Shown here one piece after another: positions 34,428 through 56,359 of a stretch of DNA of 64,000 nt. The translations under genes and the position numbers were made by a program. The stretch is from the NCBI RefSeq assembly GCF_902652985.1, contig NC_047018.1, forward strand, positions 29,140,001-29,204,000, given 5' to 3'. The number at the start of each line of letters is the position of its first letter. Positions within the stretch are counted from its first letter, which is position 1. Below the pieces are notes generated by a model. The model saw only the letters and a list, made by a program, of their open reading frames with translations. It made no database searches and had not been told where the DNA came from. The stretch comes from Pecten maximus. Taxonomy: Eukaryota.

Positions 34428-34703
34428 ATATTTGGTTTGGTTTATTTGTTTAAACAACGTGCCAGGTTTTGACAGTGGAGGAAAGCCGGAGTACCCGGAG
34501 CAAAAATCACTGGCCTTAGGTCAGTACCTGGTAAGTGACTCACTGGGATTCGAGCTTGCAACCCAGAGGTGGAAGGCTAGTGATGAAGTGTCGGGACACC
34601 TTTACAACTCTGCCACCGCGGCCCCTCAAATCTAGCTATATACTATAATTGTTCTATATGATAAAGTGTCGGGACACCTTGACAACTGGGCCACCGCGGC
34701 CCC
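34428..34703 (-). mobile_element. V-domain tRNA SINE with locally duplicated 5' head
   Basis: Similar to the 40137-40362 element (ggaggaaagccggagtacccggag, gcaacccagaggtgga, aagtgtcgggacacctt). TSD-like tcaaagctag at 34418 and 34704; head segment repeated at 34660-34703. Confidence 0.85.
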
Positions 34704-34772
34704 TCAAAGCTAGCTATATGACAGATGCAATCTCTTCCCCAACGGGTTATATCACAGTCTTAAAATTTAATA

Positions 34773-37700
34773 AAGGGACATGTACTGTTTATAGAGGGAT
34801 ATGTACTGTTTATAGAGGGATATCTACTGTTTATAGAGGAATATCTACTGTTTATAGAGGGATACCAACTGTTTATAGAGGGATATCTACTGTTTATAGA
34901 GGGATATCTGCTGTTTATAGAGGGATATGTACTGTTTATAGAGGGATATCTACTGTTTATAGAGGGATATCTACTGTTTATAAAGGGATATCTACTGTTT
35001 ATAAAGGGATACCTACTGTTTATAGAGGGATATCTACTGTTTATAAAGGGGTATCTACTGTTTATAAAGGGGTATCTACTGTTTATAAAGGGATATCTGA
35101 AGTTTATAGAGGGATACCTACTGTTTATAGAGGGATATTTACTGTTTATAGAGGGATATGTACTGTTATAGAGGGATGCTTACTGTTTATAGAGGGATAT
35201 CTACTGTTTATAGAGGAGTATCTACTGTTTATAGAGGAATATCTACTGTTTATAGAGGGATATCTACTGTTTATAGAGGGATATCTACTGTTTATAACGG
35301 GATATCTACTGTTTATAGAGTGATATTTACTGTTTATAAAGGGATATCTACTGTTTATAGAGGGGTATCTACTGTTAATAGAGGGATACCTACTGTTTAT
35401 AGAGGGATATTTACTGTTTATAGAGGGATATCTACTGTTTATAGAGGGATCTTTACTGTTTATAGAGGGATATGTACTGTTTATAGAGGGATACCTACTG
35501 TTTATAGAGGGATATGTACTGTTTATAGAGGGATATGTACTGTTTATAGAGGGATATGTACTGTTTACAGAGGGATACCTACTGTTTATAGAGGGGTATC
35601 TACTGTTTATAGAGGGATATTTACTGTTTATAGAGGGATATGTACTGTTTATAGAGGGATACCTACTGTTTATAGAGAGATACCTTCTGTTTACAGAGGG
35701 ATACCTACTGTTTATAGAGGGGTATCTACTGTTTATAGAGGGATACCTACTGTTTATAACGGGATATCTACTGTTTATAGAGGGATATGTACTGTTTATA
35801 GAGGGATATGAACTGTTTATAGAGGGATATCTACTGTTTATAGAGGGATATGTACTGTTTATAGAGGGATATCTACTGTTTATAGAGGGATGCTTACTGT
35901 TTATAGAGGGATATCTACTGTTTATAGAGGAGTATCTACTGTTTATAGAGGAATATCTACTGTTTATAGAGGGATATCTACTGTTTATAGAGGGATACCT
36001 ACTGTTTATAACGGGATATCTACTGTTTATAGAGGGGTATCTACTGTTTATAGGGTGATATTTACTGTTTATAAAGGGATATCTACTGTTTATAGAGGGG
36101 TATCTACTGTTTATAGAGGGATATCTACTGTTTATAGAGGGATCTTTACTGTTTATAGAGGGATATGTACTGTTTATAGAGGGATACCTACTGTTTATAG
36201 AGGGATATGTACTGTTTATAGAGGGATATGTACTGTTTATAGAGGGATATGTACTGTTTACAGAGGGATACCTACTGTTTATAGAGGGGTATCTACTGTT
36301 TATAGAGGGATATTTACTGTTTATAGAGGGATATGTACTGTTTATAGAGGGATACCTACTGTTTATAGAGGGATACCTTCTGTTTACAGAGGGATACCTA
36401 CTGTTTATAGAGGGGTATCTACTGTTTATAGAGGGATACCTTCTGTTTATAGAGGGATACCTACTGTTTATAGAGGGATATTTACTGTTTATAGAGGGGT
36501 ATCTACTGTTTATAAAGGGATACCTACTGTTTATAACGGGATATCTACTGTTTATAGAGGGATATCTACTGTTTATAGAGGATATCTACTGTTTATAGAG
36601 GGGTATGTACTGTTTATAGAGGGATATCTACTGTTTATAGAGGAATATCTACTGTTAATAGAGGGATACCTACTGTTTATAGAGGAATATCTACTGTTTA
36701 TAGAGGGATATCTACTGTTTATAGAGGGATACCTAGTGTTTATAGAGGGATACCTACTGTTTATAGAGGGATGCTTACTGTTTATAGAGGGATATCTACT
36801 GTTTATAGAGGGATACCTACAGTTAATAGAGGGATATCTACTGTTTATAGAGGGATATCTACTGTTTATAGAGGGATACCTACAGTTTATAGAGGGATAT
36901 CTACTGTTTATAGAGGGATATCTACTGTTTATAGAGGGATATCTACTGTTTATAGAGGGATACCTAGTGTTTATAGAGGATATCTAGTGTTTATAGAGGG
37001 ATATCTAGTGTTTATAGAGGGATATCTACTGTTTATATAGGGATATCTACTGTTTATAGAGGGATACCTAGTGTTTATAGAGGGATACCTACTGTTTATA
37101 GAGGGATGCTTACTGTTTATAGAGGGATATCTACTGTTTATAGAGGGATACCTACAGTTAATAGAGGGATATCTACTGTTTATAGAGGGATATCTACTGT
37201 TTATAGAGGGATACCTACAGTTTATAGAGGGATATCTACTGTTTATAGAGGGATATCTACTGTTTATAGAGGGATACCTAGTGTTTATAGATGATATCTA
37301 CTGTTGATAGAGGGATATCTTGTGTTTATAGAGGGATATCTACTGTTTATATAGGGATACCTACTATTTAGAGGGATATCTACTGTTTATAGAGGGATAT
37401 CTACTGTTTATAGAGGGATATCTACAGTTTATATAGGGATACCTACTGTTTAGAGGGGTATCTACTGTTTATAGAGGGATATCTACTGTTTATAGAGGGA
37501 TACCTAGTGTTTATAGAGGATATCTGTTTATAGAGGGATATCTACTGTTTATAGAGGGATACCTACAGTTTATAAAGGGATATCTACTGTTTATAGAGGG
37601 ATATCTACTGTTTATAGAGGGATATCTACTGTTTATAGAGGGGTATCTACTGTTTATTGAGGGATACCTACTGTTTATAGAGGGATATCTACTGTTTATA

Positions 37701-40430: not shown

Positions 40431-43400
40431 TCAGTGCTCCATTGCTTCCCCGTTTGTTTTACTGTCTATCTCTTCATCACTGTCACTATCTAGTTCATTC
40501 ACATCCTCATCAGCAGCATCCTTATCCTCCTCCTCTTCTTCCTCACCTACAATACAAAACATGGTGATTATGAAACATAGCATTACTTCTACAGCATTGA
40601 CAAATATTCAAATATGTTTTTGGGAAAATAAAATTTGGATAGAGATACTAGCAAGGTAATATTTCTATAACCATCAACCAAAACTGGTTTTAAATGCTAT
40701 TATGACTTTACATCAGTTTTAAAGTTGTTAGGATACAGTGTTTTAACTATACTAGGGCTTCATACCAGTTTTACAGTCAAAATAAATAAAACACAAACCT
40801 GGGCCAATCTCCTCCATGAGCTCCTCAACATGTTTCAGAAGTTCTGGATCATCACATTTAATCTTTTCATACACCTGTTAATGACATACCAACACAAATC
40901 ATCACAGGTATTCTTATTAGGGATACATAGTGACAAATTGCAATACATAATAATAATTAAATAAGTATTTATAAACTAATCCGAATTTTTATGTTAATGA
41001 CCGTAGCGACTAAACAACAACTGTTCTGAATACATTATGACAAAATTAGATTATCTGACCACACGGGAACAGTGTACGATGTTTACTTGCCGAAATATAC
41101 GCATTTTAATTCCAATCCAAACCGCCTCACAGCTTCGGGTCGCCATCTTTGCTCAAATCAAAGCATCTGTGCGTTTGAAAGAGTCAGTACTGCAAAGCTT
41201 CTAAATGATCTTGTGTTACAAATTTTAAGATTATAATAGAAACGAAATATGGATTTTAAAATAATTTGATTTAAATTACTTATGTATTAGGTTAGCGAAT
41301 CGTAGCAATTATTTACAATGCACTCTAACTTTGCACCCAATACTGATCACAATGTTTTTATTTAGACATTTTCTATATCTTTCGCTTCATATCATTTTAA
41401 GAATTGATTTAGATTTCCCAGTAATTTCGAGGGAAATGCATTTGATGACGTAACCGTAAGTCTACAGGCTATAGAATCAGGCATCTATAGTCGATAAATG
41501 GAGGTTTGGAGTGGATAACACTTCGGTCCATTAGCTGTATGATATATTTCGTGGCGTCGGTTATTAGAACGTGACACGGAAAGCACAACGATAATAAAAA
41601 CAGAAGATCATTGAACATTCCCGGATTATTTTCGCAATTTTTGAGACACCAATGTGCTAAAATACAACGGAAAGTAACACAGATTTAATTCATAGCTATC
41701 GTATCGTAACCTATGTAGTTGGACTAGACCTACTTTCGTTTTACAGTTTACGGATATGGTCATAAAATAATTCATATTCTGAGCCATAGTCGATCTAATT
41801 ACTTAATTGCGGGATATTTCTATCAAGTATATTTGTACTTCTCATGTACAGGGTACATCTTTGTTTAAAATTGACTGGTCTGTAGGTCTAATCTTACTCC
41901 CTCAGCTGACCCTGACCACAGGGCCACGTTAATATCGTATCCTTTTGTAAACACCTCATAATAAATGTATCAACGGCAGAATCGTCTGGATTACACTTTT
42001 TACCGTTTAAATACTTTAATATATAAAACTTATAACCGGTTAGCTTGTAATAATAATAATAATAATAAATATTTTATTAGTGTGTCACACATTTTAAAAT
42101 ACATACATAATAGTTTTAACTAAAACAACGCATGATTTATAAAATGCCCAGCCAGTATTTGGCTTACGAGACACAGAAATTAATATACAACATAAACACA
42201 AATCAATCATGATTAAAAGAACGACGTTTTCTCATACATAAAAACACTGTTCTAGCTGTAAAACATTGCAGAGATGCCTCATTCATTAAAAATATAAATT
42301 TATCTTTCGAACACATATCTAAAAAATCTGATGAGATGTCATTAGCCTTTATAAAAAGAGGTTCCCGGATTTCATTATAATAATCACACTCGCATAAAAA
42401 ATGAATTTCAGATTCAACAGATTTAGATTTACAATATGTACACAGTCTATCACATAATTGTATTGCAGGTTTAAAATAGCGACCAGTCTCTATACATAGT
42501 GGCAAACTTCCACATCGTAGTTTAGCTAAAACGCTCCTGTGTGATCTAGGCATAATACTGGTTACATAAGTTTCAGGTATTAAATCTTTCTTAAACAATC
42601 TATAAGTTCTCAGCTTATTACCATTTTGTTGCCCACTATCTGTCCAGACCCTTGTAAACCATGACTGTTCATCTAACTTAAAAACTTTTTTAGAAATATT
42701 GTGCATGACCGCTTTCGTAGCTCCGGTAGCCCTCGTGATGATTTGGTCGACTTGGTAATGTTTTGCTAGTTTATTTGCGTTAGCATCCCAGGACTTTCCC
42801 TTCCTCTCTGACCACTTATGGACTTTATACAAAAGTCTATCACAATCCACTGATTTCAGTCTACAGCACAGTCTAAAAACCTCTATCCGCTGTTTGGCTA
42901 GACACGATATCCAACCCATATCACCGATTTTACCCGCGTTAGAAGTATTTCTGGACACACCTAAATAAATCCTCATAGCTCGGTTCTGAATATTATTTAT
43001 TAGCCTATGTTCAGTCTGTCCCCATATGGCTGAACAGTAAAACAGTATTGGTTCAACAATAGTCTCGTATAGCTTGGTAAATACTATGTACTATGTACTA
43101 TACATGTATGTAGCTACAGTATCAATTTCTCTTGTTCAGCTATTACCTTACACATCGATAATACCATACAGGTATCAGTAAATTAACAATAGACCATCTA
43201 TTGATGAATTACCTGTTAAATGTCAGTTGTAGAATCCAGCTTTGTAGCTGTAACAACACCGCTGACACATGAATTTGTCACCACCCACCTGTTTAGCCTG
43301 ATGTAGGTAGTAACGAGCATTCTCCTTGAAGTCTGAGCCCTGTAGGTAGTTGGCCCAGCCAATCATATACCAGACTTGAGGAACTTCATCATTCTCATCA

Positions 43401-46400
43401 AGTAAACCTTCCAGTACATCCACAGCTGTCTAGAATTGGTATTAACAGGACTTTCAATTAGCCAACAGGAAAGTGCATTCATCAATTTTTTAATTATTAA
43501 CAACAGTATTATAAGGAAAGAACACTGTACACACATTCTCTGCAATGATTAATCCATTTCAGCTATTCAGTGTAATAACTAACTACATGCATACCATCCA
43601 AATGCATTGTTACAAATTGCATTATTGAATATTGAACTAAAACATACTGAAATGTAACCATAAACAACCATTGTACAACATAACAGTTGTGTAAAATGAT
43701 ATTAATGAAAAAATATTTTAAATAAAATAAAAACATTTTCAACTAACCTCATATTGTTTTACTTCAGTTAAAATTTTGGCTGACGCTATCCTTGTATCAT
43801 AACTCAGAGGAGTTAACTGGAAAAGAAAAAACAAATATCAATATCTGAAAATATAACTGATGTTTTATGATAAATATTTGTATATACAAGTCATAACCTG
43901 ATTATGACATCATTAATTTAGGTCCCACTCAAATTACCTCCCTTCTGTCAAATGGAAATAATTGTTATACATGTACCTGAAACTACAGCATGAAATAAAA
44001 TTTCAAAATACCCTTATGGTGATCCCTAATTTATCTTTCATTTTTCAATAATTTACATTAGAAATAAATTTGGTGATCCCTAATTTATCTTTCATTTTTC
44101 AATAATTTACATTAGAAATAAATTAAGTGTTTAAACAACTTAACTATAAATCTTCACTGACAAGAACATAAAATTCTGCATCAATATTTTTTGACAACAC
44201 AGCTAATTCTCAGGTCCCATGGGGATGGCGTGAATGTAAAGATTACCTCGAGTGGGTTAAACTCCTCATCAGGCACTTCTCCTTTGTCAGCTGCTTTATA
44301 TTTGGGTAACCATAATGACACACTCTTTTTGATCATCTCTGCAGCCATCTAAAACAGCACACATTTAACTGTTATGTTTTAAGTGGTACAAATGTATATA
44401 GAGTTTACTTATTTATCCATTTCTTTTGTACATTGATTTGATTGATGGGGCTTAATGCCTTGTTCCAGTTAAAACAGAGCCTAGGACTCTTTTGTACAAA
44501 TACTTCATTTATATTGTAAAATTTTCTGACAAATGGGAGCAAAAAGTAAACCAACTGAATAGGTAGTGAAAGAGAGAAGCTTTTGTATCATCTTGATACA
44601 CATCACTTTTATCTTCTCATTCTCCATAAGAACTATGCTACAATATCAGGGGGTATGGAATGAAAATACTTTACCTCTTCATTCTCTTTAGAGAGATGGA
44701 AGCTGGCCATCATCTGATAGGCCTCAGCATTCTCGCTATCTATTCCTAGAGCATGGTTTATGTACTGTTCGCATCTAACGTCTGCATCCTCCTCCATGCT
44801 GCAAAGTTGAATTTTAAAAGTAAGAACCACTTTTATGATTCAATAACAAAATGCACAATTGTATCTTTATGTGTAAAACTTAACACTAGCTCAAACACAT
44901 TCGAAACAAAGTTCACATTTTCTAGCACTAAAGATGTTTATGTGAGCTGTTTGATTAATGACAACCTTAGTATCTGTACTGGTATTTAATAAAAAAAAAT
45001 ATCACCCTTTAATGAGTCTTTAAAGTAACATATTAAAGCCAAATTCCAGCAAAGTTCTACTTTGGAGCCTCACCCCTCTGTCTTCAGGGATTGGACCTGA
45101 CCCTTTTGTATAAGTAATGATTGCCATCCATAATGATGTTTCAATCGAAATATGGTTGTAATCCATTAAAGGATTAAGGAGGAGTAGCAATTTAAAGCAG
45201 AATTTCGGCTAAGTTCACCTTTTGGGGCCACACCCCTTCTCTTCCTAGGAGTCACACCTACCTCAATTATATGAAATATGATTGGCTTTCTGACAGGATG
45301 TTTCACACCAAAGTTGGTTGTAAATCAGACAAGGGTTAAGGAGGAATAGGGTTTTAAAGCAAAATTTCAGCAAAGTTCCCTTTTTGGAACCCCTCTGACC
45401 CCAGGCATCACACCAGCCTCATTTATATAAAATGATGTTTCACATCAAATGTAGTAGTAATCCACTTTGGGTTCAGGAGGATTAGAGAGTTTTGGAAGTA
45501 AAAATCTTACGCATGGCGGAGGGTGTATAATGAAGGATGAAACATTATGGCAATAGGTCATCCTGACCTCTGGGTCAGACAACCTAAAAATCTCCTTGGT
45601 CTATAACCTTACCAGCAGTCTGTCATGTAGAGCTCGGCCAGAGACAAATAGGCATTGCAAATCTCCTCACAGGAAACCCCGTCTCTTGGTCCACCTCCAC
45701 ATGCAGCTGCCAACTGCCAATATCAAATCACACTTTAACGAAGCAGAAAGTCAAAAGAGACATTGCACATGTGTTAGAACTACAATTTATTGTGTATTGC
45801 CCGCTCCTTTTGACAGCCAACATAAGTCAAAATAATTGTTTCATGAATTAAATCTGCAGATAGCATGTTACATTACATTTTGCATGGTCATCTACTACGT
45901 AATGAATTTTGAGTACAAGTACACTATCAGGGAATGATCAGATTGTATTTCCAGGTCTACCTGTAAGTTGTCTGTACTTTGTATGTAAACAGACAGGTAA
46001 ATTCAAATTTCTGATTTAAACAGCAATGTCAGCACCTGGTACTACACACATATTTCCTTATACGAGATGTATTGAATTAAATGTGAGTAGTAAATTAAGT
46101 TTTCGACAAGGCATTAGACATGGGAGCGGAGACAGTTATCATAAAAGGAACATGTATAGTTGTAATGCAGACTTTAATTTGAATGTTGTTAGCCATACTG
46201 GAAGCACATGGTATTCAGGAGGGGATCAGTTGGGCTATTTGACAGTGACTCTGAAATGTATGATGATGGGAATAATACTACGCAGTTTTCTGTATTCAGA
46301 AATTCAGTTCGCTTAGGTACAGACCGTGAGAAATAAGTGTGAATAGATATATGCTTAATAATTAAATCTATAAATGAGGTTAAACGACATTGGACTTGAC

Positions 46401-49400
46401 AAATATTTTATAGTCTACAATTTGTATGGTTTTTCGAAAACATACCAAAAAGCCCTCTTTATCACATAGCCTGCAGAAGATATTTTTAATGGTTTGAATT
46501 GTATAACCTGCAGGCAATATAAGCTATGGTTTACTTTTGACTTTCCCATGGTGTAATTTGTATCTACATTGTATTTCCAGTTGGTAGTTAAGCAATAAGT
46601 ATGCCATTCTACCAACATTTTATATTTCATCATAGTTTAGAAGTATCTGTCCAGCAAACTCATTACAAAATATAAAAAATAAAAATTAGATATGCTAATT
46701 ATACACTGCATACCTCTGTTGCTTGCTTTGCCTCGTATTCCTTCATCATCAATTCTATTCCCTTCTGGAAGCATTGCACAGCCTGCGCACCTTCAAACAA
46801 CTGTCCCAGGTACATGTATTTGGAGTGGCCTTGGTTAGGACTAACCTCCACAGCTCGACCAAAACACTGTACAGATAGTGTTATGAAATAATGATCAATG
46901 ACAACCATCCAAGGGAAGTAACCATGTATTTTACACTGGAGGTATTCTGTATTAGAAATACATTGAATACTGGTATTTTATTACAATCAAAATCATATGT
47001 CAATTTACTTTAATCCTTTCTATTAAGAAGAGTATTGCAGAATTATGTTCAGGTTTTTAATTATAAGCCTGGATACATCAGATATTTAAGTACTGATTAG
47101 TGAAGTCATTGGTTTTTAGCAGTGATCTTTAGAATTTCTTGTGGAGAATATTGGAGCACCTCAGAATATAGGTACACAGCAGAATATTGTACCTGTTTGG
47201 CTGCCTCCTGATTTCCAAGCTCTAACAAAAGAGATCCCGTTGTTTCCAGGGCCAGAATGCTATCTGGCTCCATCTCCAGAGCTCTCTGACAGAATTTTTG
47301 GGCAAGTTCATATTCAAATCTATCGATACAATCTTCTGCCTGCACAATAGAAAACATAGGACCGATTTATAAAGTAGAATATACAATATCATGAAATTTA
47401 TTTTAAGTAACAAAACTAACTTTTATAAGTTATGACAATTACTGCATAAATGAAGAATAAAAATGAAATATCAGTTTGTTAAAAGTAAAAATATGCACTG
47501 TAGTGGAATATAACTCTGAAGGTTTGTATTCTTTACTTCAGTATTCAAACAAACATTGCGTTATTATTCTGGTGCAAAGCAACAGTGATTTTGAGTTCAA
47601 CTTCTCAGCCACCAGAGATACAACTCACTTGATCCCTGAATACTTTAAAGCAACATTTGTTTGAAATTTGTTATGACTTATAAACAATAAATAATATAAG
47701 AAATATATTAATAGTGTTTAACGATTTAATGTAATACTTGTAAGTAGCACAGAGTAATTGATAAATATATTGTAGAATGGGTCCTTCCTACAGTCTACTA
47801 GTCTAATTAAAAATTATGCTCTACTAAGCGAGCTAAAAGTTATACCATTGATACATCAAACCATTATATTTCTAAATAATAATTTCGTCACTGTGATGTT
47901 TCTTAAGCACTACAGTAACCAATTGACTGCCCTTCTTCACTTTATATACATATTCTAAAGTGGATGAAGATATCTTTCGATAAACATTTCTGAAAACTTA
48001 AAACACACATTAAATGATCTTCTTTATGGTAAAAAACTTACTTTGGCTAATGATCTATATATTAATACAATATACAAGTCCATGCTTTATATAACATATT
48101 GCATACCTAGATGAGACATATTATGTTCCTGCTAGGAAGAAATATCAGGGAGCAATAGTCTACCTTTTTTTTAAAAATATGTTCTGGTGCTCTAAATTTT
48201 TAAAAGCACTTACAAAGCTCAATTTGAATAACCCTAATTTAGCCACTCTATGCAGATAAACAGTTATAGAAAATCATCAAGTCTTTAATAATGCCCTACT
48301 GATGATAGAAGGTCTCTATTTACATCATAAATTTACCTTCTCCAAAAGTTGTTCAACACTGTATTTTGGAGATTTCCCTTTCGATTCATGTGCCACTTCT
48401 CTTTTCGCCTGCTGTATACGTCTCCTTCTTTCAGCTTAAAAAACAAAAACATAAAAATATGAGGGAAGTTGTTTGCATAAATACATATCATGTAATTACA
48501 TATAATACGTTATTCGGAGATATACATATTAAACTGAAAAACACACTGTTACTGATTGAATACAGGTCTTTGGAGTGGTAATCCATGACTTTACACCTGA
48601 GCCATAGAATTATGCTCCTTCAGCTGAGTGAATACTAGGTAAAAGCCACTGGCCTGTTCCTTTCATACAAATATGGAACATTGTATTGATGTATACCTGG
48701 TAAACATCTTAAGGCCTCTATAATCAGTGGGTAGTTTCCGAGTTTTAATAGCAATTATAAAGAAGTATGGTATTGATTATCACATTATATTATCATGAGG
48801 GTATATATTCTATCATTAAACATATATGTCACGAAAACATGACAGACGTAGAGACTTTAGACTCTGTCTGATGCACAAAATTACCAAAAACCAAGTAGTC
48901 ATCAGCCAACACAACAGACATACACCAACAAACAGGCAATCAAGGCATACCCATCACAAATCATTTCAACTACCACACTGCAAAACCATGGCCAGAAAAC
49001 AATCATTTTTTTTTCAAGTACAATATTTGAGTGGAATAAGATCCCACCAGATATCATATCCTCCTGTCAAACAGCTGAATCATTTAATTAAGACTGCCCT
49101 GGCCTCCTGTCAGTATATATCCCCCAAAATTAAGTAAAACCTATATACACATCTTTCTGTTGGCTTTCTAGGAAACGATCGCGACTGCATCTCTTCTCTC
49201 TCATAACATTATCTTCAACTTGTAGAAGTTGATCATTACCATTTAGAAGAATAACATAGGGAGCTTTAAAACTTCATTGTTTATGTTATGTTTAGTTCCA
49301 TTGCTCGAAATCATAAAATACTCTTTCTTCGTGTTTATGTCAGTATATGGACAAATATACTGTATTGTATTAGAAGATATCACACTGTTCTACACCGTCT

Positions 49401-49563
49401 TATCAAGGCATTTTAAAAGCATTTTTGTTTTTTGTCGGTGTCTTATGCTACGTGTAGTCACTGTAGATATCGAGTTTAAGGACATTGAAAACTAAAAATC
49501 AGCTGCTTGTTTAAAATTACCAAGAGATCCTTCAACACTTTTCTTGAATTTCCGTTTGCCCAT
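40431..49563 (-). CDS. ACL4: TPR-repeat assembly chaperone of Rpl4 (Acl4-like), ~389 aa
   Basis: Phase-consistent exons: 49563-49521, (optional 49218-49141), 48434-48337, 47339-47193, 46866-46714, 45713-45613, 44798-44675, 44348-44247, 43816-43748, 43429-43289, 40874-40799, 40546-40431. Family-typical motifs: ELAQKFCQRALEMEP, GHSKYMYLGQL, AYLSLAELYMTDCCMEEDA..RCE, SYDTRIASAKILTEV, VLEGLLDENDEVPQVWYMIGW, acidic C-tail. Confidence 0.88.
42048..43085 (-). mobile_element. 5'-truncated CR1/L2-group LINE (end of ORF2 plus 3' UTR) in Acl4 intron
   Basis: ORF 42203-42976 has the post-RT C-terminus NKLRTYRLFK...LAKLRCGSLPLCIETGRY...RLCTYC...ESEIHFLCEC. (TTA)n tail at ~42048-42068. Confidence 0.88.
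45030..45590 (-). mobile_element. Decayed HINE/pearl-type element with ~165-bp core repeats
   Basis: Three degenerate cores (aaatttcagcaaagttc...tttgg...atgatgtttca) and a terminal hairpin aggtcatcctgacctctgggtcagacaacctaaaaa. Confidence 0.55.
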
Positions 49564-51189
49564 GTTCTCTGTATCAGCTTCAATACTTTTAGAGTAAGTA
49601 CATCTCCTAAATATTATGCTGTGCCACCGCTCACATGTGTGAGCAAATCGATGCGAACAGACGCTTGAAAAATCATCATCACCAGAAAGCTTAACTACGA
49701 CTGGTAATATTAAAACCAAATTGCGGAATGGCTCCTACAGAAAATCCGATTTTATGTAGAGTCTGTTCGTTTATGCGGACAAACCGGTTCGTGAGTTTTT
49801 AAATGTAATATTTCAAGCATATATCTTGTCTCACATGTAAATGTTAATACAGGCCTTCGAAGTCTTTGTCACTTTGTCAAGGCTCGTCTGAAAACAATAT
49901 AAAAAACGAACAACACCGGTCCAAGTGGTCTAACCGTTTGGATAGCAAAAACGAAAACGGCTTAATCTGCGTTTTCTATCTTTAAAAAAAATCTACTTGG
50001 CCTATCAAGTAAAAGAATTAGAGAGACACAAATATTTGTAAAGGACTACATAGTGCATGTATCAGAATAAGCATACACAATATGCATGTTAATTCAATTT
50101 ATCAAATTATCGGGTCCACTTTTAACATTCGCTGTAAACAAAAAGCTGTCAAAAAGCACCAACATATTCTGCGTTTTTATGTCGTACGTAATGTGACTAT
50201 AGATAAAAAAAAATCAAATGTAGGCATATATGACGTTGCATATAAAAGAGTAATGATGAAAAAAAAGTAAAAAAAAAAAAAAAAAAACCCAAAAAACCTG
50301 AAAAGCTATTCTGAAGATGAATATACATGTTTAGTGTCAACACGTGTTCTTTTCACAATATCTGGTGTGGTGTAAGGATATGACCTAATTTAAAATGCCG
50401 CTAGTTGATATGAAAAACAGACAAATTCGGACATGTATTGAACTATTACAATTTATTTTACAAATCATAACAAAATGCTAAACAGGTTTATATATATTAT
50501 AACATAAAAAACAACAACCGCTGGTGCGTTATCCTTTCCATGACATCATGAAGCGGCCTTCAAATGTTAGCCAATCAAATTGCATAGAACCACATGATTA
50601 AAAAATAGTCTTGGTCAAAGGTCACCGTACGCGTGTCAACCCAATCAAAACGTATTTCGATAGTTTATTCCACGTGTGGTATAAACTGAATGTTATTCAA
50701 CAGTTTTAATGATTATTCCATGCCTAGAGAGATGAATAGCACACACCTATTATGGTAGGAAGCGCTATATACAATGAGTTGAATGTACATTATTATGATT
50801 AGTTGCTGGGTGTGTCAGTGGTAATTTCCTGCTCCATCTGTCGTCATATCAATATAGTTATGGACAAGCTACCAAAGGATTGAAGACTTCTATACTGTCG
50901 GTTGCTGGTCTGTTTTCTCATGTGTTACCTAATTGATATTGAATATGTTATATCTTGTAAATCTTTTTATTATGTCTTTAATGTATTCTTCCATTTTTTT
51001 AGTTTTGTTTTTAGGGATTTCCAATTCGGATGGAAATCTCTATTGTTTTCGTTATATTTTTTTTCTGATTTCCACAGATTTTGAAAACAGTTCCATTCAT
51101 AAATGAATGAAGATAAAACGACCATATTATAGTGCATGACAACAACATCGAGCTGATCTTTACAGTAACATTTTGGTAACAATAAGTTC

Positions 51190-52700
51190 AAAGGTCAAGA
51201 TCACAGATCTAAAATAGATTTTTTAAAAGCGTTTTTTGAACGATCATAACATCATAAGGAATCGTTCCATTACATTCACGATGAGTGTGTCATGTAGATA
51301 ATGGTCGGGGCTAACTTTTCTCCATGCCATGTTATCAGAGAATATGTCAAGGTCACAACCTCGTTATAGGATAAACAATATGTCGGGGGGGAAAAAAATC
51401 TGAATCTGAGATTTACTTTCACCGCACATAAAAGAGCATGATCCTCTGAGGTGGACTGTGCGATTTCTTTGGTATCGGATGAAAAATGACGGAGATACGG
51501 CACTTTGAAAATAAAAAATCAAAGTTTCACGCAAAAATGCTCTTAAAATAGTTCAGCTCCTTCATATTTGCACATATAGACTTGATATTTGGCATAGCAT
51601 ATAAGATTGGCTACAAAAGATACTATTTTTCATTCAAGGTCAAATAATCAAATAAATAAAAATGTGAAAACTATTCATTCAAATCAGGTTCTTTGTCCTT
51701 TCGTTTTCTTCTTTGAACACTCAGTGCATTGCTTATTTTATGGCCGGGACTAACTTTTCTCTGAAACATGTCATTAGAAAATATGTCAAGTTCAAGGTCC
51801 TAGATCGAGGTCAAATCAAGGTCAAAGATTAAAACAATTCATTGCTTTTTTAATTGTATGTCAAAGAGCAACATTTACTGAGATGAAATATGCAAGTTTT
51901 ATGGTCGTGCAATAAAACAAATGACGTAGAAATGACACCTTTAAAAATGTTCATTTTCCCGCCAAAATTGAAATTTCTCCCACAAATGCACCTATTTTCC
52001 TTTATTTATTTATCTTCATACACATACAGTGTATGTTTGATATTTGGCATATTAACAGCATAAACGAGCGCCTACAGAGCAGATTGCTTTCAAAGAGACA
52101 GATTTACATAAGTACTTAGTACTTGTTTCTGAATCCTTTTTGAAATTATATTGTATATATTATATTGCTATGTATTTTTGAATAAAATAAAGTTTAAACT
52201 AGATTGCTTTTCATTAACCTTGACCTTCGTTCAAGGTCACGGAGGTCAAATGATCGAAAATAAAAAAAATCGAATTCTTTCAAAAAAGGTCTATTTTGAC
52301 AATATAGAAGAATATAATCTCTTGAAGATGTCTGCAACGTTTCAAGGTTGAGTCGTAAAAAATAACGCAGAAACAGCACTTTGAGAACCCTTCTCCCGCC
52401 AAAATTCAAAATTATCATCAAAATGCACTTTAAAACGTTCAATACTCTAGGCCTCATCCATACAGACTTTATAATTAGCACATTTATAGCATGAATGACT
52501 AGCAACAAAGGCATGTAAATCGTTGTTCTTGACTTCGTAGCTCAAGGTCACGGTCAAGTCAAATGACTGGTTAGAGAAAATAAGCGCAGAGAAAACGAAG
52601 AGAAAACGGAGAGAAAACGAAGGTAAAACGACCGTCAGAACGATAACATGTCTTCGATCATTTTCTAGATGGAAATCCCGTGTTTTTATCTTGAGCAAAT
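51190..52700. mobile_element. Probable decayed non-autonomous DNA transposon
   Basis: Recurrent caaggtca/tgacctt motifs and duplicated blocks (ggg(g/a)ctaacttttctc...aatatgtcaag at ~51307 and ~51746; ttgatatttggcata at ~51581 and ~52037). Termini not resolved. Confidence 0.4.
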
Positions 52701-53126
52701 CTATATTTTTTTGTTTTTTGTTTTTTTTTCTTGTTTTTTTTTTTATATTTTGATTGAGAGAGTTTGTTGTTTCTAGAGCTACATATCAGGAGAGTAAAAG
52801 TGCTTGTTTACCAGACATTTGTGGAAGATAAAACGTTTACCATTATACTACTTCCATGGAAAATGCACTGAACCTGCTTCCTTCCCAGCACTAGTTTCAC
52901 CGAGCAAACCCGTGAAACCACTGAATCACATTCCTGTTACCTCGAAACGGAGTGCACTAGGGGGATACCATTTACACAATACATTATTGTCGTAAGTTTC
53001 AGGATCGTTATATATTATTAACATGTTTCGATATTCTTTAGATAAGATAGCAGTAACGTATGGATACCGTATACTGGCACTGCGGTCAAGGTAACTCCTA
53101 CTATTTACTAGAATTCATATTCACAA

Positions 53127-53136
53127 GTCACGTGAC
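53127..53136. promoter_or_regulatory. Perfect CLEAR-type palindromic E-box GTCACGTGAC upstream of the VDE-like gene
   Basis: Exact 10-mer 115 bp upstream of ATG 53252, followed by a TATA-like ttatatag at ~53146. Confidence 0.5.
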
Positions 53137-53251
53137 AGAACACTGTTATATAGATGACCTGTTAACCTTATTATGAGCTCATGACTTCCACTATCTAAGC
53201 CCCAGACCTGGTATTCTATTGCAAGAGGTTGGACGTACAACTATCGCGGAC

Positions 53252-54052
53252 ATGTTGTCTATATTACTTTCCGTAACACTTATTCTTCTGTTGTGTCCGA
53301 ATGGAGCAAGTGGCCAAAACATCGTCTGTATGATGTTGCATTGCAAGGACGAATCTAAGAACTGTATGTTAGACTCAGACTGTCGATCGGCACTCGCATG
53401 TATCACGGGTTGTGGGACGAAAAACGAGACGTGTATGTTTGACTGCCTGTACTCCTACGAGGATGACGTGTTCGACACCTTTATGAAGTGTGCATTTACG
53501 GAATATAAATGCATCACCATGGTTTCGCCAGACCCTGATTTCCGCTGTAAGCCTCCACATTTACCTCTGAAAACTCTGCCTGCACAACAACTCAAAGGTT
53601 CGTGGTATATCGTCCTTGGACTGAATCCGAATTTCGATTGTTTTGACTGCCAAATTACCACGTTTTATCCATCGAACAATTCAAATTCTTTGTTTGTGAA
53701 CGAACATTTTGACGTGCACACCATTGATGGAAAGCTGAAGCACAAATTGGTTAACGAAACCGCTATGCAAAATAATGCATCGTTTCAAGGACTGCTGGAG
53801 TATAAGAGCATGCAAATGGGACACGAGACGACCACAGAGTGGAGAATTCTGTACCAGGACCCAAAGCTAAGCTATATGATTGGATACTACTGCGGTCACG
53901 TGGCTTCCGACTGGTACTACGAAGGGTCCGTCGTCTTCTCTCGGAATCCTGAGCTGAGTAGTGAAATTATGACAGAGGTTAAAGGTCAAATGACAACCCT
54001 CGGTCTGCCTGTCGACCAGTTTTGTGCACCGAAAACATCAAATTGCTTTTAA
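53252..54052 (+). CDS. Violaxanthin de-epoxidase family (VDE/VDL-like) lipocalin protein, intronless CDS, signal peptide, 266 aa
   Basis: Signal peptide MLSILLSVTLILLLCPNGASG. VDE-type Cys-rich N-domain CMMLHCKDESKNCMLDSDCRSALACITGC...ETCMFDCLYSYEDDVFDTFMKCAFTEYKC. Lipocalin motif GSWYIVLGLNPNFDCFDCQ (plant VDE GKWYITSGLNPTFDAFDCQ) and YYCG...YEGSVVFSR (VDE YYRG...YGGAVVYTR). AATAAA at 54069-54074. Confidence 0.9.
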   Translation: MLSILLSVTLILLLCPNGASGQNIVCMMLHCKDESKNCMLDSDCRSALACITGCGTKNETCMFDCLYSYEDDVFDTFMKCAFTEYKCITMVSPDPDFRCKPPHLPLKTLPAQQLKGSWYIVLGLNPNFDCFDCQITTFYPSNNSNSLFVNEHFDVHTIDGKLKHKLVNETAMQNNASFQGLLEYKSMQMGHETTTEWRILYQDPKLSYMIGYYCGHVASDWYYEGSVVFSRNPELSSEIMTEVKGQMTTLGLPVDQFCAPKTSNCF

Positions 54053-54307
54053 TTGTTATCGATGGATGAATAAATATTTTAGATCTTTGAAAGGTATAAT
54101 GTTGTTCCTCGATAAATATCTAAACCTATGTTATGTCAATAATATGACTATCGATATATATTCCACATGACTATGAAATGATAATGTCTACACTTGTTAT
54201 CTCAATATACGACATATACGACATCATAAATTCAACCATTGTCATATCATCATCTTTGTTTTTCGAAAACATGCCGCCCCCCTTTCCCTTAAAAACTGGA
54301 AGTATCA

Positions 54308-55706
54308 TTTTTAGCTCACCTGCCCGAAGGGCAAGTGAGCTTAGGCCGTGGTGCGGCATCCGTCGTCCGTCCGTCCGACGTCATTTTTTTCATTTAAACA
54401 ACTTCTTCTCAATAACCAAGAGGCCAAGGGACTTGATATTGGGCCTGTAGTATGCTGGGGTGAAGGGCTACCAAGTCTGTTCAAATAAATGACCTTGACC
54501 TTCATTCAAGGTCACATGGGTCAAATAGGCTATAATCTTCAAAAACATTCTTCTCAATAACCAAGAGGCACAGGGACTTGATATTGGGACTGTAGCATGC
54601 TGGGGTGAAGGGCTACTTAGTTTGTTCAAATGAATGACCTTGACCTTCATTCAAGGTCACATGGGTCAAATAGGCTATAATCTTCAAAAACATTCTTCTC
54701 AATAACCAAGAGGCACAGGGACTTGATATTGGGACTGTAGCATGCTGGGGTGAAGGGCTACTTAGTTTGTTCAAATGAATGACCTTGACCTTCATTCAAG
54801 GTCAAAGGGGTCAAATAGGCTATAATCTTCAAACAACTTCTTCTCAATAACCAAGAGGCCCAGGGACTTGATATTGGGTCTGTAGCATGCTTGCGTGAAG
54901 GGCTACCAAGTTTGTTCAAATGAATGACATTGACCTTCATTCAAGGTCACAGGGTCAAATAGGCTATAATCTTCAAACAACTTCTCAATAACCAAGAGAC
55001 CCAGGGGCCCAATATTTGGGCCTGTAGCATGCTGGGGTGAAGGGCTACCAAGTCTGTTCAAATAAATTACCTTGACCTTCATTCAAGGTCACATGGGTCA
55101 AATAGGCTATAATCTTCAAAAACATTCTTCTCAATAACCAAGAGACCCAGGGGCCCAATATTTGGGCCTGTAGCATGCTGTGGGGAAGGGCAACCAAGTT
55201 TGTTCAAATAAATGACCTTGACCTTCATTCAAGGTCACATGGGTCAAATAGGCTATAATCTTAAAACGACTTCTCAATAACCAAGAGGCCCAGGGACTTG
55301 ATATTTGGCCTGTAGCATGCTTGGATGAAGGGCTACCAAGTTTGTTCAAATGAATGACCTTGACCTTCATTCATGGTCACATGGGTCAAATCGGCTAATA
55401 TCTTCAAACAACTTCTTCTCAAACACGAAGAGGCTCAGGCACTTGAGGTTGGGCCTGTCTGTAGCATGCTGGGGTGTAGGGCTACCAAATGTGTTCAAAT
55501 GAATGACATCGATCTACATTCAAGGTCACAGGAGTGAAATATTTTTAAATCTTCTGATAGCCAAGAGTCACCAAGACCCGATATTAGGCCAATAATATGC
55601 ATTGAATAAATTGGTTATCAGCATAGTATCTGTAGAAATGACATCAATCAACTGCACATTCGCTGTAGAACTTGCTGAGCGATACAGGCCCATTGGGCCT
55701 CTTGTT
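54308..55706 (+). mobile_element. Helentron-associated non-autonomous element (HINE/pearl type) with ~8 internal ~145-bp tandem core repeats
   Basis: 5' tttagctcacctgcccgaagggcaagtgagctt hairpin, (gtcc)n microsatellite, 145-bp cores (accaagaggc at 54415, 54560, 54705, 54850...), 3' tgagcgatacaggcccattgggcctcttgtttt hairpin; inserted in T runs. Confidence 0.88.
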
Positions 55707-56359
55707 TTAAGATATTACTGAAAGTATCATTTTTTCTTTCATTTTCTAGTGATATCCATTTTGACCATCCCAGCAAACAGACCGTCGTCCTTGTTCTCCT
55801 TTCTGGTTATATCGTAGTATAGCACATGACTATATATATGTATTGAATATTGGAGAAATGGAAGTAAGCTATGGAAACTAAAAATCGATAAAAGAAGTCA
55901 TAACATTTTGCACAAATGCTTGCCCTATATGAGCTGTTATCTTCGCACTTCGCCTGAACACATCTGCCAACATCTACAGAACAACCCTGAAAGTCGTAAC
56001 AGAACACCAAACGACAAAATGACTTATCAATTATTTCAATGTTTTTTTTATTACATGTAGCTGTCATTACAACAACACCACATTTTCTGTAAAATCTACT
56101 AAGATTCATTATCCAGTTTAAGAACCAATCTAACCTGATCCACACGCAATTTAAAAAAAAATCTTGGGACTAATCAGTCCTTCGGTAACATTCCTTCAGT
56201 GTTTCGATTGGCTGGATGTTGAAATAAAGTTACCGCTGTGTGCCGTGTGTGATTTTGCGCACAATAATAGAGTGAGACAAGAGGTTATGGTACCGTTCAT
56301 TTATTCCTTTACAAAATTATGTTTACCAGTACAAAGATTATGCGATGAAGATTACCCGA

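Follow-up and report, generated by a model that had tools for sequence, protein, structure and literature searches.

Violaxanthin de-epoxidase (VDE) and its relatives VDL and VDR are described in a 2026 review as proteins of photosynthetic eukaryotes (PMC13181403). In plant and algal VDE (PF07137, 3CQN/3CQR), a ten-cysteine helical domain is followed by a lipocalin barrel, and a transit peptide directs the protein to the thylakoid lumen. VDL1 and VDL2 of chromalveolate algae are cofactor-independent, with violaxanthin-neoxanthin tautomerase activity and conversion between diadinoxanthin and allenoxanthin (PMC7056318, PMC9499517), while VDR of plants, green algae, and diatoms has the same two domains. 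A VDE-like protein of the heterotrophic stramenopile MAST-4 was reported to derive from green algae, and its authors suggested a lipocalin role (PMC3998028). In the literature we found, a single animal sequence is discussed, an oyster EST that was discounted as a likely contaminant (PMC2483416). Animal VDE-family proteins in databases carry automatically assigned names. Bivalves convert dietary fucoxanthin and peridinin at their epoxy, allenic, and acetylenic end groups, and the available part of the source describing this names no enzyme for these conversions (PMC6949322).

Here we describe a VDE-family gene of the scallop Pecten maximus, located within a window of 64,000 nucleotides to which all positions below refer. 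Our best explanation, in which we place slightly better than even confidence, is that it is a host gene of a separate animal VDE subfamily, that it has been inherited vertically, and that its product is secreted and binds or converts xanthophylls.

A transcribed and constrained host gene

The gene sits at 29.19 Mb on a chromosome-scale contig (C4) of the 918-Mb assembly and is the sole PF07137 match in the genome, with no paralogues beyond it. Its coding sequence (53252 to 54052, plus strand) runs uninterrupted in one exon from the ATG at 53252 to a stop codon ending at 54052, contains no internal stops, and encodes 266 amino acids. An initial annotation, made from the sequence, had assigned this reading frame to the VDE family in an animal genome and proposed a HMMER search as a check. 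We found that the protein matches PF07137 with E=2.6e-46 and 158.5 bits (cut-off 25.7), and that residues 25 to 259 cover profile positions 3 to 239 of 242, i.e., the full length. The Arabidopsis VDE lipocalin domain, 3cqn, was recovered by sequence search of the PDB (E=1.7e-12), and the match to the Pfam Lipocalin profile (E=0.0045) is below the cut-off. The profile match bears out the initial reading.

Three RNA contigs, gapless and colinear with the genome, cover the gene: X1 (53194 to 54092, depth 157), X4 (53230 to 54087), and X7 (53249 to 54066), with support from three runs in all. They define a single-exon transcript of at least 53194 to 54092 on the plus strand. No upstream coding or UTR exons were found, as the contigs follow the genome colinearly from 53194 onward and no joint involves the gene, and X1 depth is zero over the unique flanks at 51668 to 53170. 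Transcription yields a 0.9-kb RNA that is not spliced, the flanks are silent, and the intact, intronless CDS of the initial annotation stands. An AATAAA polyadenylation signal, also noted there, lies at 54069 to 54074 (plus strand), and the longest RNA contig stops 18 nt downstream, at 54092. A TATA-like TATATA at 53147 to 53152 (plus strand), found by pattern match approximately 47 nt ahead of where the longest contig begins, may serve as a promoter box.

On one side of the gene lie the exons of an introned TPR gene (43272 to 49584, minus strand), recognized as eight colinear blocks that are 81-92% identical to L007:507-7638 of the scallop Ylistrum balloti, a region carrying a 388-aa TPR gene call on its minus strand. 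On the other side is a host interspersed repeat (54403 to 55541) holding a 145-bp tandem array of 7.9 copies (TRF); it has at least 144 matches spread over many chromosomes of the same genome and is very abundant in RNA contigs. The GC3 and flanks of the VDE-family gene are host-like. The gene itself is syntenic with Ylistrum balloti, and its dN/dS of 0.055 against the Ylistrum orthologue shows that it is under strong purifying selection.

Algal DNA contaminating the assembly is the explanation once suspected for the oyster EST of this family (PMC2483416), and a dead relic would be a second way to dismiss the gene. Against these possibilities stand the position of the gene in a contig of chromosome scale, where its neighbours are an introned host gene and a repeat found throughout the host genome, as well as synteny in a second scallop genus, the intact reading frame, low dN/dS, and transcription. 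We therefore consider either possibility negligible. Contamination and pseudogene status are ruled out by locus position, RNA, synteny, dN/dS, and the host repeat, in agreement with the initial annotation, which had judged contamination unlikely from the host setting.

Predicted targeting, fold, and cavity residues

Sequence and hydropathy predict a signal peptide at residues 1 to 21 (53252 to 53314, plus strand), with cleavage between ASG and Q. The N-terminus, MLSILLSVTLILLLCPNGASG followed by Q, combines a hydrophobic core (mean Kyte-Doolittle 2.78) with a small-x-small cleavage motif; hydropathy revealed no second hydrophobic segment elsewhere in the 266-aa protein, and the N-termini of orthologues are hydrophobic too. 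As read from the sequence, this 21-aa hydrophobic pre-sequence, in an animal that has no plastids, does not have the make-up of plastid or thylakoid-lumen targeting, in line with the initial annotation, which had proposed an ER signal peptide instead. The scallop protein in this respect differs from VDE, with its lumenal transit peptide, and from VDL, which is plastid-targeted. The four N-glycosylation sequons noted there are likewise present (NET58, NNS142, NET168, and NAS175), a further difference from VDE, and NET58 is kept as NxT across molluscs and amphioxus.

Behind the signal peptide, alignment to VDE defines a Cys-rich helical N-domain at residues 22 to 99 (53315 to 53548, plus strand), with model helices at 24 to 84. 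All ten VDE cysteines are kept: C9, 14, 21, 27, 33, 37, 46, 50, 65, and 72 of Arabidopsis correspond to C26, 31, 38, 44, 50, 54, 61, 65, 80, and 87 of the scallop protein. An AlphaFold2 model (pLDDT 92.9) folds residues 100 to 266 (53549 to 54049, plus strand) into a lipocalin barrel of eight strands with a C-terminal helix. Its top Foldseek match in the PDB is the 3cqn VDE lipocalin domain (E=4.3e-13, target-normalised TM 0.84, rmsd 2.6), so that VDE is the best match in both sequence and structure. The next matches are the binding lipocalins apoD, bilin-binding protein, sandercyanin, and crustacyanin (E 1e-8 to 1e-10). Crustacyanin and apolipoprotein D share with the scallop protein a secreted eight-stranded lipocalin barrel, but they lack the Cys-rich N-domain and VDE motifs, and their sequence matches are non-significant. 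The Glu-rich C-terminal domain of VDE is absent, as had been noted initially: the last conserved cysteine is C265 of 266, with one residue before the end. VDL similarly has a short or absent Glu-rich tail. These features are best explained by a protein that enters the secretory pathway, is soluble, rich in disulfides, and N-glycosylated, and would comprise the two core VDE domains.

In plant VDE, Y198 is a catalytic residue in contact with ascorbate, W179 binds substrate, Q153 is a cavity residue, and H121 acts as a pH switch. D177 is the proton donor, its mutation inactivates the enzyme, and the roles of VDE residues including D177, W179, and Y198 have been described (PMC13181403). We found that the equivalents of D114, D117, C118, Q119, F123, W179 (W197), and Y198 (Y213) are retained in the scallop protein. 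The Tyr213 codon lies at 53888 to 53890 (plus strand), and tyrosine occupies this aligned position in 130 of 141 family members. The position of D177 is Thr195 (53834 to 53836, plus strand), on which HMMER against 3cqn, MAFFT, and hmmalign agree, with no gap up to the invariant W197. Across the alignments scallops have Thr at this position, with Ser in its place in oyster, Pinctada, and ark clam; the carboxylate is missing from all pteriomorph sequences. The residue is Glu in heterodonts, abalone, chiton, and amphioxus, as in VDL and VDR. The pH-switch positions are altered as well, with H121 and R138 replaced by T136 and D154, and H124 is also changed. The threonine at the D177 position was overlooked in the initial annotation.

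Since the D177 equivalent is Thr195, canonical de-epoxidation by the scallop protein is doubtful, and the idea of a de-epoxidase enzyme put forward initially is weakened, for scallops specifically, by loss of the catalytic carboxylate. A true ascorbate-dependent de-epoxidase, which would share the mechanism of plant VDE and, in a digestive compartment of acidic pH, turn dietary violaxanthin or diadinoxanthin into zeaxanthin or diatoxanthin, could draw on the retained fold, ten N-domain cysteines, W179, Y198, D114, Q119, and F123. The proton donor whose mutation kills plant VDE (PMC13181403) is nevertheless a threonine here, the pH-switch residues H121 and R138 are gone, the Glu-rich domain is absent, and the protein lies outside the VDE clade in our tree. 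We consider this explanation quite improbable.

A second acid is found at the cavity position of plant Gln153, which is Glu169 in the scallop protein by HMMER, MAFFT, and hmmalign (53756 to 53758, plus strand). The position is acidic in all pteriomorph bivalves save a divergent sequence (P0018), and in a chytrid that likewise lacks the 177 acid; Glu here is also a feature that several members share with VDL. The 169 acid accompanies loss of the 177 acid (22 of 32 versus 20 of 109 sequences) in several lineages, though not all; family-wide, this association is suggestive, and its counts are not phylogenetically independent. Purely as a hypothesis, Glu169 might substitute as catalytic acid for the one lost at the D177 position.

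The same loss would also suit a lipocalin without catalytic activity that carries or stores carotenoids or another lipid, functionally similar to crustacyanin or apolipoprotein D, with an ancestral catalytic activity lost in pteriomorphs. The cavity carboxylate at the D177 position is gone from every pteriomorph sequence, the next-best structural matches are binding lipocalins, and a role in binding would accord with the strong purifying selection. However, a redox-sensitive Cys-rich domain, Y213, D129, and the buried Glu169 are all kept, which goes beyond the needs of simple binding. We give a carrier of this kind a fair chance, though well below even.

Orthologues and descent

Among bivalves, both pteriomorphs and heterodonts have orthologues, as do abalone, a chiton, amphioxus, and a chytrid, so that three mollusc classes are represented. 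The orthologues lie on chromosome-scale records in Ylistrum, Pinctada, Tegillarca, Crassostrea, Mercenaria, Mactra, Mya, Haliotis, Liolophura, and Branchiostoma. Homologue searches that were word-based and followed by alignment contributed nothing further except heterodont bivalves and amphioxus paralogues, and the blanks of these searches are uninformative for other phyla. Proteins of the animal type share a length of approximately 260-290 aa, a signal peptide, the ten N-domain cysteines plus C99, DCFDC and YYCG motifs, and a C-terminal FCxPxxxxC, a pattern into which the scallop protein fits. The chytrid homologue is labelled 'Vitamin D3 receptor' in GenBank, apparently through a mix-up of the acronym VDR.

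In a maximum-likelihood tree, the animal-type clade has a support of 89/97. Bivalves form a clade (99/94) in which Heterodonta are sister to Pteriomorphia, as in the species tree. VDE (with plant Sarcandra; 98/97), VDL (100/100), and putative VDR (with Closterium; 100/98) are each monophyletic without animal sequences. The putative VDR clade, an assignment that we infer, is separate and well supported, with long N-terminal extensions and WSW replacing GxWY; its domain starts at residue 118-310 in 4 of 5 sampled members (84 in P0131), compared to residue 22 in scallop. VDR nevertheless shares Glu at the D177 position with the animal members other than pteriomorphs. The chytrid falls beside abalone instead of outside the animals, with weak support (93/57) and a long branch. 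By AU test, mollusc monophyly is not rejected (p-AU 0.29), a clade of molluscs and amphioxus without P0051 is borderline but not rejected (p-AU 0.086), and an animal clade sister to VDL is not rejected (p-AU 0.31). All three tests leave the deep branching among subfamilies unsettled. A separate animal or opisthokont subfamily within the VDE family, which we propose here, is the best explanation of these relationships.

We questioned whether the gene was passed down or acquired. Its relatives in molluscs of three classes, in amphioxus, and in a chytrid, together with the species-tree-like branching of bivalves, disfavour a recent or bivalve-specific transfer, and the tree carries no sign of recent algal transfer. 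On our best explanation, inheritance has been vertical at least since the bivalve ancestor, and probably since the mollusc ancestor. The initial annotation had offered ancient retention or horizontal acquisition and had looked to nesting within algae as support for the latter; the clade instead falls outside the monophyletic VDE, VDL, and VDR, so that recent acquisition loses ground while ancient retention and ancient transfer both stay in play.

An ancient transfer into the mollusc ancestor is possible because most of the mollusc genes lack introns and the distribution among animals is patchy. Introns are absent from the gene in scallops, oyster, abalone, and chiton; amphioxus has four exons, and Mercenaria and the chytrid have two each. 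These introns are lineage-specific, and no position is shared among the three, which is uninformative on common descent. In its fuller form, this explanation has the gene acquired horizontally by the mollusc ancestor, and in separate events by amphioxus and by the chytrid, from algae or other protists that they ate or parasitised. It accommodates the presence of only molluscs and cephalochordates as named animals in the clade, the missing introns and unshared intron positions, and the placement of the chytrid with abalone, however weak. It has to contend with a clade outside every sampled plant or algal group, bivalve branching that follows the species tree, mollusc monophyly that is not rejected, host-like GC3 and flanks, and no donor lineage that can be named. 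We give it a substantial chance, if clearly below even. Our data fit ancient retention and a very old transfer alike, and the two cannot be told apart.

A proposed role and its meaning for the family

The function of the scallop protein is one that we infer. For a vertically inherited, secreted member of an animal subfamily, we propose export into an oxidising compartment, likeliest the digestive lumen or the lysosomal system. The barrel would take up a long hydrophobic isoprenoid, most plausibly a xanthophyll from eaten algae, which the conserved W197 and Y213 would hold. Because lipocalins bind many ligands, a carotenoid is the default of the family only. The ancestral animal form would have used a buried Glu at the D177 position to protonate and open a 5,6-epoxide, as in VDL and VDE. 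This Glu became Thr or Ser in scallops and other pteriomorphs, and the pteriomorph protein would therefore either rely on a different acid of the cavity, for which Glu169 at the Q153 position is the candidate, or have become a carrier instead of a catalyst. VDL is similar to the ancestral form in its Glu at the D177 position, which the scallop protein lacks, and the reactions of VDL take place at epoxide, allene, and alkyne end groups, those that bivalves modify in dietary carotenoids (PMC6949322). Handling of dietary epoxy-xanthophylls by the scallop protein, as proposed initially, is plausible.

Each named heterotrophic holder of the family either eats algae or lives on them as a parasite: molluscs, amphioxus, a chytrid parasite of Haematococcus, and the vampyrellid Leptophrys. 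This link is drawn from a handful of named taxa. MAST-4 is a further heterotrophic holder tied to algae (PMC3998028); set beside scallop by description only, its protein is similar in belonging to the VDE family, having no N-terminal extension, and coming from a non-photosynthetic grazer. A speculative reading, to which we give little credence, is that the VDE family is not a photosynthetic invention but an older group of lipocalin enzymes, secreted and rich in disulfides, from algae-eating heterotrophs, with an animal branch that remodels dietary xanthophylls. If so, the older holders would be molluscs, amphioxus, probably sponges, chytrids, vampyrellids, and MAST-4, and the animal branch would remodel the epoxide, allene, and alkyne ends of fucoxanthin, diadinoxanthin, and peridinin into the typical carotenoids of marine animals. 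In pteriomorphs, the catalytic acid would then have left the D177 position and be found instead at the Q153 position, as Glu169.

An animal VDE-family gene that is chromosomal, expressed, constrained, and common to three mollusc classes and amphioxus alters the known range of the family. The natural swap of Glu for Ser or Thr between heterodont and pteriomorph bivalves offers a ready comparison for studying mechanism. For bivalves, the scallop gene is a concrete candidate for the transformation of the epoxy, allenic, and acetylenic ends of dietary algal xanthophylls (PMC6949322).

Predicted protein and fold

We found that the violaxanthin de-epoxidase (VDE) family coding sequence, running from the ATG at 53252 to the end of the stop codon at 54052 (+), is an open reading frame of 266 amino acids without an internal stop. 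The Pfam VDE family, PF07137, matches the protein at E=2.6e-46 and 158.5 bits (curated cut-off, 25.7 bits) with nearly the full profile covered, which upholds the intact VDE-family gene of the initial annotation. By sequence, the sole significant solved relative is 3cqn, the lipocalin domain of Arabidopsis VDE (E=1.7e-12). An AlphaFold2 model built from a 70-sequence alignment (mean pLDDT 92.9) predicts a helical N-domain (helices within residues 24-84), followed by a barrel of eight strands and a helix at the C-terminus. Four VDE lipocalin chains take the top Foldseek ranks (3cqn_A: E=4.3e-13, TM 0.84 by target, rmsd 2.6 Å), followed by the ordinary binding lipocalins apoD, bilin-binding protein, sandercyanin, and crustacyanin. 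Sequence and structure agree on the VDE lipocalin domain noticed at the outset.

The hydrophobic N-terminus (MLSILLSVTLILLLCPNGASG, followed by Q) reads as a predicted signal peptide, and neither a second hydrophobic segment nor an ER-retention motif was found in the protein sequence. N-glycosylation sequons occur by sequence pattern at NET58, NNS142, NET168, and NAS175, and the NxT at position 58 is kept throughout molluscs and amphioxus. The mature protein has a pI of 5.1, and the scallop chain lacks a Glu-rich tail, stopping 1 residue past its last conserved cysteine (C265 of 266). A TATA-like box lies at 53147 (+) and an AATAAA at 54069 (+), both recognized as sequence patterns. The ER-type signal peptide, four sequons, poly(A) signal, and missing Glu-rich C-terminus of the initial annotation are thus all borne out. 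With 16 Cys in its mature chain, the protein would form many disulfides as it folds in the ER; it would also be glycosylated and leave for a lysosomal or extracellular compartment.

Transcription and genomic setting

RNA contigs colinear with the genome span the gene in runs X1 (53194-54092, depth 157), X4 (53230-54087), and X7 (53249-54066); the library of X1 is annotated as RNA-Seq, and X4 and X7 are presumed to be RNA. No joints were seen within the gene in these contigs, and the unique flank at 51668-53170 has zero coverage in X1. These data fit an unspliced mRNA of approximately 0.9 kb that ends 18 nt past the AATAAA, its ends being approximate, and the depth no measure of expression level, as both derive from contigs.

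The gene is the one PF07137 match in the assembly (918,306,378 bases, 3,983 contigs). Upstream, eight blocks at 43272-49584 (81-92% identity) are colinear with the exons of a Ylistrum balloti TPR gene, which adjoins the VDE-like orthologue in that species. Downstream, a 145-bp tandem array (54403-55541; 7.9 copies, 89% matches) sits within a dispersed host element (approximately 54173-55842) that has at least 144 matches across many chromosomes of the same genome. The Pecten and Y. balloti VDE-like genes share 82% DNA identity, and their comparison gives dN 0.072, dS 1.30, and a dN/dS of 0.055, which is only approximate since dS is near saturation; purifying selection is clear. Contamination and a pseudogene are both excluded by the RNA coverage, the syntenic TPR neighbor, the host-wide repeat, and the dN/dS value. 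The host setting originally claimed is confirmed by both flanks, and we consider it nearly certain that the gene truly belongs to the animal clade of the VDE family.

Several other features of the window were observed. RNA contigs over the tandem array reach very high depth. An uninterrupted 570-amino-acid open reading frame at 1422-3134 (-) contains many ankyrin repeats (Ank_2, E=2.2e-43). Three long open reading frames at 34649-36987 (+) give low-complexity matches (Antimicrobial_3, DUF6095), GC skew is strong at 34-38 kb (0.24-0.39), and repeats or low-complexity sequence probably make up the 34649-36987 stretch.

Relatives, gene structure, and phylogeny

HMMER, run exhaustively against 1.84 billion representatives, returned 568 relatives at E≤0.001. 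Counted from chromosome-scale records, named orthologues are present in pteriomorph bivalves (Ylistrum balloti, 86% identity; Pinctada imbricata; Tegillarca granosa; Crassostrea/Magallana), heterodont bivalves (Mercenaria mercenaria, Mactra antiquata, Mya arenaria), gastropods (Haliotis rufescens, H. cracherodii), the chiton Liolophura sinensis, cephalochordates (Branchiostoma lanceolatum, with two paralogues, and B. floridae), and the chytrid fungus Quaeritorhiza haematococci, the nearest to the Pecten gene being that of another scallop. Some were auto-named 'violaxanthin de-epoxidase, chloroplastic-like' by the NCBI pipeline, and that of Mya is a 'VDE-like protein'. In GenBank the chytrid protein (P0021; L012:6001-7120) has 'Vitamin D3 receptor' as its product name, which looks like confusion over the acronym VDR (VDE-related). 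The deposited T. granosa protein (P0010) is wholly unlike all orthologues beyond approximately residue 200, probably owing to a frameshift or gene-model error in the record.

No intron interrupts the coding sequence of either scallop or of oyster, abalone, and chiton, while amphioxus has four exons (placed using the database protein) and Mercenaria and the chytrid two each, at non-corresponding intron positions. The gene has thus resided in each of these genomes for a long time, which fits ancient retention with many losses as well as old independent transfers.

In a maximum-likelihood tree (IQ-TREE, LG+C20+F+G4 by PMSF; 68 rows, 267 columns), animal-type sequences form a single clade (89/97). 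Within it, bivalves (99/94) divide into sister Heterodonta (100/100) and Pteriomorphia (92/90), matching the species tree, alongside a polytomy of chiton, abalone with the chytrid (93/57, long branch), amphioxus with P0051 (98/94), and a Tara Oceans sequence. The animal-type clade falls outside the clade with land-plant VDE (98/97), a clade of chromalveolates that includes Haptolina and Octactis (putative VDE-like, VDL; 100/100), and a clade of proteins with extended N-termini that includes the charophyte Closterium (putative VDR; 100/98), where the VDL and VDR labels derive from taxon content, architecture, and Glu at the D177 position per PMC13181403 rather than from reference sequences. Clades D and E, both made up of short proteins, are also separate, and E holds the algivorous amoeba Leptophrys vorax. 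AU tests rejected neither mollusc monophyly (p 0.29) nor an animal clade sister to VDL (p 0.31) and were borderline for molluscs plus amphioxus without P0051 (p 0.086), so several deep topologies are compatible with the data. The initial annotation had proposed an anciently retained or horizontally acquired gene; no nesting of animal sequences in a photosynthetic lineage was found among those sampled in the 68-row tree.

Two metagenome contigs carry further relatives. On one, a tandem pair of intronless genes (L004:1526-2320 and 6054-6848; 264 amino acids each) places inside the pteriomorph group, lacks an acid at the D177 and Q153 positions, and has C33 replaced by His. On the other, of 392 kb, a clade D gene (L009:10001-10910) adjoins Death-domain genes; the ESM Atlas cluster closest to it in size (291 amino acids) is labelled 'commonest Porifera', and sponges may hold another animal branch of the family that is unrelated to the first.

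Active-site residues and proposed function

Residues are numbered by mature Arabidopsis VDE, checked against a plant VDE from our search, with roles per PMC13181403. The scallop protein keeps ten of ten N-domain cysteines as well as D114 (scallop D129), D117 (D132), C118 (C133), Q119 (Q134), F123 (F138), W179 (W197), and Y198 (Y213). Altered positions are H121 to T136, H124 to Y139, R138 to D154, Q153 to E169, F155 to A171, and D177 to T195. In the proposed mechanism D177 donates a proton to the epoxide; plant VDE mutated at this residue is inactive, and VDL and VDR have Glu there (PMC13181403). The T195-D177 equivalence is concordant across three alignment methods and gap-free up to an invariant Trp. 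In our alignments heterodont bivalves, abalone, chiton, amphioxus, and the Tara sequence carry Glu at this position, the chytrid carries Thr, and all pteriomorphs carry Ser or Thr save the divergent P0018 (Leu). Two further features are common to pteriomorphs: His191, which is specific to the lineage, and an acid where plant VDE has Q153. Judging from strand parity and homology to Q153/F155 of VDE, the latter position should face the cavity. Among 141 non-independent family members, an acid at 153 is present in 22 of 32 without the 177 acid versus 20 of 109 with it. We hypothesized that the catalytic acid relocated from position 177 to 153, and put this no more strongly because several lineages lack both acids and the counts are non-independent.

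The barrel would hold a long hydrophobic ligand, for which the family default would be a xanthophyll. All named heterotrophic holders of VDE-family genes are algal feeders or parasites. Bivalves are documented to transform fucoxanthin and peridinin from their diet at the epoxy, allenic, and acetylenic end groups (PMC6949322), and VDL enzymes perform this type of end-group chemistry without cofactors (PMC7056318). We consider a dietary carotenoid the probable ligand of the scallop protein; catalytic activity on it is possible but somewhat less likely than not, and a canonical ascorbate-dependent de-epoxidase is improbable.

Coesel et al. 2008 noted one Crassostrea virginica EST, which was unplaceable and suspected of contamination (PMC2483416), the Manila clam genome paper lists the VDE family without comment, and a VDE-like gene has been described from the heterotroph MAST-4 (PMC3998028). 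A 2026 review still treats VDE and its relatives as a family of photosynthetic eukaryotes (PMC13181403). Since no paper characterizing animal VDE-family genes was found in the literature searched, which covered a minority of subscription journals, we count the animal branch as new. Our data indicate that it is a distinct animal branch of the known VDE family, caught by automatic annotation and unrecognized in the literature.
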